Assembly: GCA_026770705.1 (NCBI GenBank) | Contig: JANJGN010000150.1 | Coordinates: 496,001-560,000, forward strand | DNA: 64,000 nucleotides | Reading direction: 5' to 3' | Source: Isurus oxyrinchus | Taxonomy: Eukaryota | In this document: one piece after another, positions 1,501 to 52,634 of the stretch | How positions within the stretch are numbered: the stretch's first letter is position 1 | Layout: each line of letters starts with the position of its first letter | Translations under genes and position numbers: made by a program | The notes under the pieces: generated by a model | What the model was told of the DNA's origin: nothing | Seen by the model: only the letters and a program-made list of their open reading frames with translations | The model's database searches: none

Positions 1501-1795
1501 CACAGTCTTGGCACCAAAGGGATGAGGAATTGCAGAGACATGAGCTTTGGGACACCCTGAGGAGGTGAAAGGTGCTATGGAAATGCAAGTCCTTCCTTGC
1601 TTTTCTTTCTTAAAGCCTTGTAACTCTCTGCAGAGCACCTATCATCCCACAGAGAATCAAATTAGTCTGTGAAGACATTGTCTAAAAGCAGTTCTGATCT
1701 CTCAAGAGCATTCGGACAAGAGGTGAAGTCTCATTAACTCCTTTCTCTTTCAGAACTTCAGAGTTAGAAGCTGAGGAAATATCTGGGAGTGGACA

Positions 1796-1835
1796 ATGAT
1801 CGGTAAATCTTACTTCCTCCTGTCACTTCTCCAAG
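1796..1835 (+). CDS. Siglec-like unit A, signal-peptide exon (MIGKSYFLLSLLQ, phase-1 donor)
   Basis: Acceptor tttctctttcag ends at 1753, ATG at 1796, donor CAAG|gtaat at 1835/1836. It joins the V exon in frame to give MIGKSYFLLSLLQVGLS-QEW. Six further copies occur in the window. Confidence 0.85.
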
Positions 1836-2869
1836 GTAATACCATCGTCAGCTCGGACAGATTCATGGTGAATAGTCTTTGTAAAAGATCATTCTTATTG
1901 AGCTCTGATTGGGAACTGATTCAGCAGTGAGGCAGTGTACAAACTCACACCAAGTCCCATTCACCCATCACCCCTGTGCTCACTGATATACACTGACTCC
2001 CTGTCTGACAGTAGATTTGGAGGAGAGCAGAGATCTCAGAGGGTTTTAGGGTTAGAGGAGGTTACACAGATAGAGAGTGTAGAGGGGGAATGGTGGGGTA
2101 AGAAATCAATGATGAGAATTTGAAATTTGAGTCATTGCTGTACTGGGAGTCAGTGTAGGTCAGTGAGTGACAGGGGAGCGATCGGCTGAATAGAGAATCA
2201 GGGATAAAAACTGGGGGATGAGGTCTATCCCGATGCTAGGACACGGATAACAATGCGCTGTAATTTTGTGTCTTTTGCTGATTTTAATCAGAATTTCCCA
2301 TGAAGACAACACAGCAGCTCCTAGAATAGACAGGCTGTTCAGTGTCACACTTCCTGTCCATTCTCACCTTGCTAGATACTTCAATAAGGGAGCAAGATAA
2401 CTGAAAGAGAGAAGGAAGGTAAAGCTGTCTGTGTGTAAATGGGTCAAATATTCTGAGTTATCATGATTGTCTCTGACCTGCTGCAGAGTTTTAAATTCAC
2501 AGAATATTAGCACTTTGCAGCTCAGAGAGAGACCATTGACTCACTGCCTGAAAGGCCGGTGGCAGCAGATTCAACAGGAACTTTCAGAAGGGGAACTAGA
2601 TAAATACTTGAAGGGGACATTTTGCAGGGCTGTGGAGGAGAGAGCAGAGGTGAGTGTGGGACTAATTGGACAGATCTTTCAAAGGCCCAGCACATGTTCG
2701 ATGGGCAAATGGCTTCCTTCTCTTCCAGATCATTCTACAATCTGATAAATTAAGCCCCACATCAATAAATCTTAAGGCTACCGCTGCAGGATGGATCTTT
2801 GAGAAGGACAGGGAACAAGAGGTTTCTGGTATCATTTTCAAATTTCTTGACAATTATACAAGTGTTTAG

Positions 2870-50663: not shown

Positions 50664-50816
50664 GACATCTTAATGTCCCAATGAACAGAACAACTTCCAA
50701 CAATGAGCTGTGGTTGGTGATTCCTCACATTACATCCAGGGACACTGGAGACTATCAGTGTGTGGCAGAGAATGAACATGGAGCAGTGGAGGGATTCATA
50801 ACCATCACTGTGGAAC
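50664..50816 (+). pseudogene. 5'-truncated copy of the membrane-proximal C2 exon (no acceptor)
   Basis: Matches 42838-42990 (HLNVPMNRTTSNNELWL...ITVE); its 5' half is replaced by repeat sequence. Confidence 0.88.
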
Positions 50817-52494
50817 GTGAGTGTACACAGACTTCAACATCTCTCGCAGATTCGAACACGACACAAACACCCTCAAACATACACATCTAAGTAGACACAT
50901 GCAGACACACATATATGACCACACAGAAAGACACACTCACACACAAACACACTAACACACACTCCCCTGTGGGCGACCTGACCTCCCTCAGTACTGCCCT
51001 GGAGAGTTGGCCTTAATTCTGGGATTTGTGTTCCCATTCATATTTATGCAAGAATATGGAAATTACAAAGTCTATTACAGACAGTCAGATGCATAGAGAC
51101 ACTCACAGATACTCTCTGCCTCTCCAACTCTCTCTCTCCCTTTAAGAAGCTTCCTGAAAGCTCACCCTTCGAACAATCACCGGTCCCAAATCCTCCTTAT
51201 CTGATTTGTGTGATTTTCTTTGTGTATTTGAGAGTAAGAGAGAGGTGGAGAGGTTTAGGAGGAGAATTCCTGTTGGTGAAAAGCTTACATCATGTTCTCA
51301 CCTTTCCAGTGCCCATATTTCACATGATGTCCAATGTCCTTGTTCATAATGGGAATTGCCTATGTAAACATCACGCTGTAGTTACATTCTCCTACCAGTG
51401 GTGGCATTGTAGCACTTAATCCTTGTGTTTCCCAGCTTTTCAAGCAACTCCACTTCCCAGTTTGCTCCACAAGCTGTGAGTTCATTGGAATTCAATTATT
51501 TCTCAAACGGTAGATTTGATGTCATTTTATTGAAAACTTCCTCAGTGCCTCCCTGAAGGGTTTACACTCTCTGGGAAGCAGGAATAGGCTGGATGTTGGG
51601 GAGCTCATCTTTTCCCAAAGAGTAGTGATCCTCAGGAATGTGCTGTCAGTGGGTGTGGTGGTTGCTGATTCTCTGTCGCCTTCAAGAGGGATCTGGAGTC
51701 GTTACTGACTGGGGGAGAGATCATGGAAACGGAGAATGGTACAGCACAGGAGGAGGCCATTCAGTCCATTGTGCCTGTGCCAGGTCTTTCAATGTTCTAT
51801 CCAATCAGATCCAATAACCACCATTCCAATTTGCCACCATCTTCCTCCTTTAAGTATTTATCCAATTTCCCTTTTGAAAGTTCCTATTGAATCTGCTTCC
51901 ACCGCCCTTTCAGGCAGCACCTTCCAGATCACAACAACTCGCTCTGTCAAAACAAATTCTCCTCATCTCCCCCTCCGGTTCGTCAATCTGTGTCCCTCTG
52001 GTTACCAAGCCTCCTGCCCCTTAAGTACATTGATACTGTTCACCTCAACCACTCCCTGTGGGAGCGAGTTCCACATTCTCCCCTCTCTCTGGGTAAAGAT
52101 TGGAACTGTTTATTAAGTGAGGCCTGTAAGTCCGTGGGGGAGTCCATCTCGATCCTGCCCGATTCGTACACGTGTCCGAGATGGATTTCCACCCTGCACT
52201 AAACGTTTCCAGAATTTTCTACAGCACAATCCTGTACACAACGATTGGGAGAAACATTGGACAGGGAGTCCAACAGCACAATGATCCATTCTCACCAATG
52301 TTCCACGCTAAGGGGAAAGTTCCGATTGTCCACTCTTAGAGTGTTTACAATGAAAACATTCATTCCACATTGAATCCCAGTGGATGGGTCAATATTACAG
52401 CAAATGTTGCAGTGATATGAAGCTTGATTGTTCAGCCAGAGTGAGAGATTGAAAGCGGAGAGTCAGTGATGATTTCTTTCTGTGTGTTCTCTAG

Positions 52495-52634
52495 ACAGTG
52501 GAGGAGAGATTCTGCACGTGATCCTGATCCTGGGAATACGAGCTGTGATATTCCTTGTGGCTGTGGTTATCACTATCGCTGGAGTCTGTGTCTGGGAGAG
52601 ACAAACAGTGAAAGCAAGTCGACAGACTGTTTGA
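52495..52634 (+). CDS. Activating-type TM/short-tail terminal exon with intramembrane Arg
   Basis: Strong acceptor tttctttctgtgtgttctctag. Phase-1 frame reads SGGE-ILHVILILGIRAVIFLVAVVITIAGVCVW-ERQTVKASRQTV-stop. This frame is absent from the ORF track. Confidence 0.82.

Follow-up and report, generated by a model that had tools for sequence, protein, structure and literature searches.

Siglec-type receptor genes of Isurus oxyrinchus: an on/off design in the shark family and a probably decaying activating copy at one locus

Do closely linked Siglec-like genes that share their first exons and end in different membrane modules form a working activating/inhibitory pair in a shark? The question is raised by a 64,000-nucleotide stretch of Isurus oxyrinchus DNA (GenBank assembly GCA_026770705.1, contig JANJGN010000150.1, positions 496,001-560,000 of the forward strand), hereafter the window, to which all positions refer. 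The original prediction, made from the letters alone, had proposed a paired system of three units, called A, B and C here. The on/off design is present in the shark family, and a working pair is absent from this locus. The window would be part of a large CD33-like Siglec-type receptor gene cluster from a shark close to the great white, evolving by gene birth and death. It probably holds one usable gene (unit A), one copy that has lost its tail (unit B) and one decaying copy of activating type (unit C).

Exon maps were obtained by self-comparison, exon-by-exon translation and tblastn with database relatives, AG/GT splice sites and phases being checked; searches were run exon by exon or with database proteins. 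All immunoglobulin (Ig)-type exons of the window lie on the + strand, and the three units occupy 51 kb of that strand as closely linked genes. The exon anatomy observed here includes AG/GT splice sites and compatible phases across the mapped exons. The leader exons are near-identical; the part from the ATG to CAAG, followed by gt, comprises 40 nt and encodes MIGKSYFLLSLLQ. Seven leader copies are found (ATG at 1796, 27265, 29032, 30791, 32558, 45743 and 47867), and the same N-terminus recurs in the shark RefSeq models P0002, P0008, P0017 and P0151. The original prediction counted three different membrane modules. The tyrosine tail of A and the arginine-containing transmembrane (Arg-TM) exon of C stand, but the transmembrane (TM) exons of A and B are homologous (75% DNA identity), leaving two TM types.

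The domains encoded by these exons support the assignment of the genes, from their predicted products, to the Siglec type of a cartilaginous fish. V3, the V-set domain of unit B, matches Pfam V-set and Ig_CD22, and its best PDB matches are Siglec-5, -7, -8, CD33, MAG and Siglec-10 at E values of 1e-15 to 3e-13. Bit scores range from 60.7 (Siglec-5) through 57.0 (Siglec-7), 55.1 (Siglec-8) and 54.9 (CD33) to 54.6 (MAG), with lower values for sialoadhesin (49.4), Siglec-15 (40.8) and CD22 (26.1). HMMER aligns YFFRIE of V3 on YFFRVE of Siglec-5, and the strand-F arginine (YxFRxE) is found in V3 and in both V domains of unit A, V1 and V2. The Siglec cysteine pattern, judged from sequence only, is also seen: SCVQIPC and GDCSL align with LCVLVPC and KNCSL of Siglec-5. 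In this pattern, cysteines stand on strands B and E and strand F has none, while one more cysteine each in V and C2-1 serves an inter-domain bond. V1, V2 and V3 all keep the arginine and the cysteine pattern. The C2-set domains follow the V domain. C2-1 matches C2-set_2 and keeps its extra cysteine (VSCTFNTTC...LSCRV), and C2-3 and C2-4 match Ig_3, Ig_2 and I-set. A full-library HMMER search returned 262 proteins at E<=1e-10. The closest relatives are shark and ray RefSeq models named CD33-like, Siglec-8/10/11/12/13/14 or MAG-like, which are 65-94% identical; the nearest are great white shark models, with 94% for V3, 97% for C2-1 and 93.5% for the Arg-TM exon. All close relatives being elasmobranch, the proposal of a cartilaginous-fish Siglec-type cluster is supported. 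From these observed hallmarks we infer sialic-acid binding by the V domains. We note that a sawfish model (P0012, Pristis pectinata, XP_051901316.1) has the same V plus C2-1 ectodomain type and a tail ending in YQEL-x7-YSEL, which resembles an ITAM (immunoreceptor tyrosine-based activation motif) and may represent a third way of wiring the family.

Unit A comprises the following features:

1754-1835, + strand: leader exon, with acceptor at 1753, ATG at 1796, product MIGKSYFLLSLLQ and a phase-1 donor
7116-7502, + strand: V-set exon V1, phase 1-1, intact, with the arginine in YYFRIE; Pfam V-set at 2e-11 and Ig_CD22 at 1e-13
10810-11178, + strand: V-set exon V2, phase 1-1, intact, with YYFRIE
11906-12202, + strand: C2-1 exon, 97% identical to great white shark P0158
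12360-13883, no strand: assembly gap or masked stretch in the intron from C2-1 to TM (12360-13144 and 13148-13883, with three letters at 13145-13147)
15539-15635, + strand: neutral TM exon, WTVGLFTAGIMLSVFLAGIFIFICV, phase 1 in and phase 2 out
16609-16690, + strand: cytoplasmic exon 1, KRKTAMEERVSGTRDIALTPSPLSVKHQ
18118-18366, + strand: tail exon with LLYANP, TEYAQI and a stop
19524-19605, + strand: second copy of cytoplasmic exon 1, inside a duplicated cassette
20950-21198, + strand: second copy of the tail exon, with ILYANP, TEYAQI and a stop; 81% identical to great white shark P0151/P0013

Alone among the three units, A looks usable: its exons predict two lectin-type V domains, C2-1, a neutral TM and a tyrosine-bearing tail. 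Tandem V-V heads of this kind also occur in models P0002, P0158 and P0159. The tail exons lie in a 2.6-kb duplication (15995-18652 and 18911-21488, 88% identical) that carries two tail exons without a TM exon, and both copies are intact. The distal motif TEYAQI fits TxYxx[VI], the immunoreceptor tyrosine-based switch motif. The proximal LLYANP/ILYANP fails the consensus of the immunoreceptor tyrosine-based inhibitory motif (ITIM) through its proline at +3; in other shark models the corresponding sequence reads LLYASINF or LLYANINF. If unit A behaves like mammalian Siglecs, phosphorylation of its tail would attract SH2 phosphatases or adaptors, and its signalling would be inhibitory. Homology of the tail with mammalian tails was considered and rejected: compared by BLASTP with a mammalian protein whose end reads LHYAS...TEYSEIKI, the tail of A scored E = 3, without significant similarity, and the likeness is confined to short motifs.

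The gap in unit A cuts no exon. It begins 157 bp past the C2-1 donor and ends about 1.65 kb before the TM exon; the exons on its two sides are phase-compatible (1 to 1), and a direct junction of these exon types exists in P0151, a great white shark model. Its left edge runs into a 33-bp minisatellite, and the matching place in unit B holds a 1-kb array of it, which makes such an array a likely reason for the gap. The unread stretch may conceal exons or a mis-join. The same 33-bp minisatellite, in up to 30 copies, is scattered through the cluster (823-1185, 17718-17975, 38563-39552, 46846-47058, 57922-58198 and 59772-60016), and a separate 37-bp array of 34 copies occupies 60073-61337.

Unit C, the candidate activating partner, is built differently:

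47332-47416, + strand: tail-like exon copy, whose end is joined to the unit C leader in RNA-type contigs
47827-47906, + strand: leader exon, ATG at 47867
48598-48628, + strand: V-exon remnant, the last 31 nt and the donor; the acceptor and about 340 nt are deleted
49488-49784, + strand: C2-1 exon, intact
50161-50592, + strand: copy of 48647-49078 (432 bp of the V-to-C2-1 intron), 100% identical
50664-50816, + strand: 3' half of a C2-4-type exon; the 5' half and acceptor are missing
52495-52656, + strand: Arg-TM exon, DSGGEILHVILILGIRAVIFLVAVVITIAGVCVWERQTVKASRQTV; stop at 52632-52634, GT at 52657

The last of these exons encodes ILHVILILGIRAVIFLVAVVITIAGVCVW plus ERQTVKASRQTV, that is, a 29-residue hydrophobic span with a single arginine (LGIRAV) and then a 12-residue tyrosine-free tail. 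At the DNA level no similarity links it to the TM exons of A and B, in agreement with the original prediction. The buried arginine would pair with the aspartate of an ITAM adaptor (DAP12, FcR-gamma), by analogy with Siglec-14, -15 and -16; adaptor coupling is thus a further step that we infer. Unit C ends in a conserved shark cassette, which intact paralogues splice straight after C2-1 or C2-4. Since its lectin (V) domain is missing, unit C cannot act as a partner that shares its ligand with A; it has only the leader and C2-1 (97%) in common with the other member, and not the ligand-binding domain. The leader, C2-1 and Arg-TM exons make an open frame, the V exon being of phase 1-1. RNA-type contigs over 47000-52999 give no sign that such a V-less form is produced. 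The 432-bp duplicate adjoins the truncated C2-4 exon and is 100% identical, whereas other paralogous stretches differ by 3-14%; it is either a very recent duplication or an assembly artefact. Unit C is most likely a decaying activating copy rather than a working partner. The proposal of paired receptors therefore survives for the shark family, in which the Arg-TM cassette sits on Siglec ectodomains, and is only partly supported for the window, where the V exon of unit C is missing and its C2-4-type exon truncated.

Four shark species (great white shark, brownbanded bamboo shark and two catsharks) supply nine database models that end in the Arg-TM cassette, all with V-set plus C2 ectodomains and an invariant TM arginine. 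Two word-limited region searches for the cassette in other receptor families gave Siglec-type ectodomains only, one of them named pIgR-like. Shark RefSeq models matching the window are:

great white shark: P0161 (CD33-like) and P0158/P0159 (Siglec-12)
cloudy catshark: P0081 (XP_072325011.1) and P0006 (XP_072326180.1)
small-spotted catshark: P0160 and P0162; brownbanded bamboo shark: P0022 (XP_072409577.1)

Like the window, these models have the same leader, V, C2-1 and Arg-TM exons (82-97% protein identity per exon) and a direct splice from C2-1 to the Arg-TM exon. Unlike unit C, they retain a V domain or two; they were predicted automatically, and their names are borrowed. In great white shark, the Arg-TM model P0161 and the tyrosine-tailed P0013/P0151 lie on contig(s) of equal size (1,818,738 bp), presumably one scaffold, and intact activating/inhibitory pairs are seen among the models of this species.

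Splicing of the cassette was followed in contigs from four public runs (four studies, two organisms), whose RNA type is a guess, aligned to 47000-52999. The joint 49784 to 52495 (GT..AG), by which a C2-1-type exon is spliced directly to the Arg-TM exon, is observed in all four. Together with the nine conserved models, it goes against the condition named as refuting the original prediction, an Arg-TM exon that no transcript splices to Ig exons and that lacks conserved paralogues. At the GT (52657) that ends the Arg-TM exon, one contig continues into unmatched sequence and others read through. Contigs of the run from the closest organism, X1, match unit C introns with 0-1% differences and include a splice into the unit C leader exon (47416 to 47827); therefore the unit C locus or a near-identical copy is present in that run. 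The C2-1 to Arg-TM splice itself is established for the family but may not be that of unit C, because the contigs may come from paralogues.

Unit B has the longest ectodomain:

35711-36079, + strand: V-set exon V3, with YFFRIE; 94% identical to P0159
36480-36776, + strand: C2-1 exon, matching Pfam C2-set_2 at 4e-9
41150-41437, + strand: C2-2 exon, a divergent C2-1-like domain
41946-42203, + strand: C2-3 exon, with the Ig_3, Ig_2 and I-set matches reported for C2-3 and C2-4
42709-42990, + strand: C2-4 exon, 82% identical to P0006
44255-44352, + strand: neutral TM exon, 1 nt longer than that of A, leaving in phase 0 and not phase 2
45215-45299, + strand: tail-like exon after the TM, GSSTGRGHSAQAERVGSSSPGEQSDRSW, 860 bp downstream and out of frame
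45710-45782, + strand: leader exon copy without V or C2 exons of its own, ATG at 45743

Its TM exon has 96% protein identity to great white shark P0017, plus one extra base near the exon end. Because of this 1-nt insertion relative to P0017, the tail-like exon at 45215-45299 is out of frame. Relaxed tblastn found nothing in the window of the tyrosine-bearing remainder of a P0017-type tail (YxN motifs). With no tyrosine exon and a frameshift, unit B is therefore left without a tyrosine signalling tail by any route. Its predicted product combines a full multi-Ig ectodomain and a neutral TM with a frameshifted and truncated tail. The earlier description of B as a neutral TM without tail exons is right about the TM and the lack of a tyrosine exon, and has to be amended for the out-of-frame tail-like exon. 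C2-2 has 31-33% identity to the C2-1 domain type, of which it is a diverged second copy with the extra cysteine and KHHG kept; C2-3 is best matched, at 34%, by a sialoadhesin-like protein of a teleost. Two genes may have been combined in unit B.

What the units have in common is a 5' block of leader, V, intron and C2-1. The C2-1 exons (11906-12202, 36480-36776 and 49488-49784) have 97.3-97.6% DNA identity and 2-3 residue differences, so that the near-identity of leader and first C2 exons reported originally is upheld. Homology between units ends about 10-35 bp past the C2-1 donor, which fits intronic recombination. Intronic duplication and unequal crossing-over would have set one 5' block before differing 3' modules. 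Between A and B, identity is 94-96% in introns, 90.8% in V and 97.6% in C2-1; between A and C it is 86-87% in introns and 97.3% in C2-1. At synonymous sites of C2-1 the divergence (pS 0.05-0.065) is not significantly lower than in introns, and no difference is seen between the 135-bp intron stretch ahead of C2-1 and the intron following V (Fisher p 0.35-0.65). The claim that the ectodomains are homogenised is not sustained by these values. Gene conversion was rejected as a necessary explanation, purifying selection on C2-1 plus recent duplication being sufficient. Across the whole V exons, the ratio of nonsynonymous to synonymous divergence (pN/pS 0.57-0.66) gives no sign of positive selection. 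A C2-1 tree (21 rows, 98 columns) is mostly unresolved, with strong support only for orectolobiform sharks against all other rows; in it, bamboo and zebra shark sequences cluster by taxon, regardless of tail type.

Several observations weigh against a birth-and-death cluster with a usable A and a decaying C. Unit A spans an unread gap, and of its tail motifs only TEYAQI fits, the membrane-proximal LLYANP being outside the ITIM consensus. The identical 432-bp duplicate beside the cut C2 exon could indicate local mis-assembly. The spliced contigs may be derived from paralogues, as C2-1 exons are 92-97% alike; contigs of organism B are about 2.5% different from the window, and the V-to-C2-1 joint (side 19-30 nt) must stem from copies with an intact V exon. 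A leader-to-C2-1 joint for unit C is not among the joints listed from the contigs. This last absence bears equally on the idea that unit C is a working gene, whose V-less product (leader, C2-1, Arg-TM) would reach the membrane and bind an ITAM adaptor but not sense sialic acid, acting perhaps as an adaptor sink or as a tuner independent of ligand. We regard this as unlikely. The three exons are intact and in frame, and X1 has contigs on the introns of unit C itself, the C2-1 to Arg-TM joint and the splice into its leader; yet none of 169 collected proteins is a V-less model, the second Ig exon is also truncated, which points to decay, and the 13-residue leader, deprived of the VGLS residues that the V exon supplies, would make a marginal signal peptide. 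It is similarly improbable that unit C is alive as a C2-only Arg-TM receptor that still captures the ITAM adaptor, a partner blind to ligand that either activates or sequesters the adaptor. The on/off Siglec system of sharks to which it would belong would rest on a single dedicated Arg-TM exon older than the split of three shark orders. If true, a V-less unit C would be a route to escape pathogens that mimic host sialic acids.

That the odd structures (the V-less C, the half C2 exon, the perfect duplicate and an A joined over its gap) are assembly artefacts of a locus with ordinary intact genes appears very unlikely. The gap inside unit A and a repeat at 100% among paralogues that differ by 3-14% speak for it, as does the finding that the best DNA-type runs contain only 0.40-0.48 of the sampled words. 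However, X1 contigs with 0-2 differences cover 47000-47302, 48109-48389 and 48800-49130 around the deletion, the V deletion cuts the acceptor cleanly with both flanks collinear with units A and B, and decayed copies are expected in birth-and-death families. A Siglec-like family without sialic-acid on/off pairing, in which the V domain binds another ligand or the TM arginine serves another assembly and the RefSeq names mirror best hits, is just as hard to credit. It would accommodate the degenerate proximal ITIM, the dissimilarity of shark and mammalian Siglec-type tails in BLASTP and the failure of PDB scores to separate CD33-related Siglecs from MAG. It sits poorly with the essential arginine, the unusual cysteine pattern and the V-then-C2 order kept in V1, V2 and V3, and with the combination of a basic residue in the TM and a very short tail, by which adaptor-coupled receptors are usually recognised. 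We thus favor a birth-and-death Siglec-type cluster as the probable account.

As part of unit B, ahead of V3, the window contains repeated start and tail cassettes:

26478-33342, + strand: four tandem 1.77-kb units, 95% identical, each with an 85-nt tail-like exon and a leader exon
starts at 26730, 28497, 30261 and 32023, + strand: the tail-like 85-nt exons, about 410 bp upstream of the leader exon
starts at 27223, 28990, 30749 and 32516, + strand: the leader exons, each with its own acceptor

The 1.77-kb unit is found twice more, at 45152-46390 and 47255-47969. The tail-like exon has 70-81% protein identity to the cytoplasmic exon of models P0017 and P0007, and by this likeness the 85-nt exon upstream of the leader is a putative derivative of a tail exon. 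Read in phase 0, the 82-nt leader exon of each of the four tandem copies is open and in frame with its ATG. RNA-type contigs contain the splice from the tail-like exon to the leader (47416 to 47827) and also lead from the leader back to the tail-like exon ("goes back 575"). Open reading frames that by eye resemble reverse-transcriptase fragments of retroelements flank the receptor units at 53635-55342 (- strand) and 24644-25188 (+ strand).

Descriptions of Siglecs paired as activating and inhibitory forms come mainly from primates, in which such pairs are interpreted as a host response to pathogens exploiting the inhibitory members. In sharks, one ectodomain block is followed by either a tyrosine tail or the conserved Arg-TM cassette in many Siglec-type genes. 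With the same paired design present in the jawed-vertebrate lineage that is the oldest alive, ancestral versus convergent origin can be put to a natural test. The window contributes the decay side, with an activating copy that lacks V, another copy that lacks a tail, and start and tail cassettes in repeated form. A literature search found no paper on shark CD33-like Siglec pairs. The genes are nonetheless already annotated, the NCBI pipeline predicting both forms in several sharks, and the added value of the locus is modest because database annotation already predicts such genes.

Among known systems, Siglec-15 resembles unit C as a Siglec with a basic TM residue. It signals through DAP12 and is a single conserved gene without an inhibitory twin. 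PMC9630641, citing Bornhofft 2018, places it with the ancient conserved Siglecs, and reviews regard Siglec-1, -2, -4 and -15 as the ancient members of the family (PMC9630641). The match of Siglec-15 to shark V3 is far weaker (E 2e-9) than that of CD33-type Siglecs (E 1e-15). In cartilaginous fish, skate MDIR is a multigene family of activating and inhibitory Ig-type receptors (PMC3031540), but its V domains resemble those of CD300, TREM and pIgR, whereas those of the shark cluster resemble Siglecs. The closest parallel is with the paired Siglecs described for primates, Siglec-5/Siglec-14 and Siglec-11/Siglec-16 (PMC4042635, PMC5701461). As in these human pairs, the shark genes are linked and have near-identical 5' exons, and one member has a tail with tyrosine motifs while the other has a basic TM residue and a short tail. 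Non-functional copies occur in the activating lineage of the human pairs, PMC5701461 mentioning such a gene copy at the SIGLEC16 locus, and probably in that of the sharks. Unlike the primate pairs, whose lectin domains stay alike by gene conversion, the shark unit of activating type, C, has no lectin domain. The sharks also differ from the human pairs in that the Arg-TM is a separate exon, one that is widely conserved among them.

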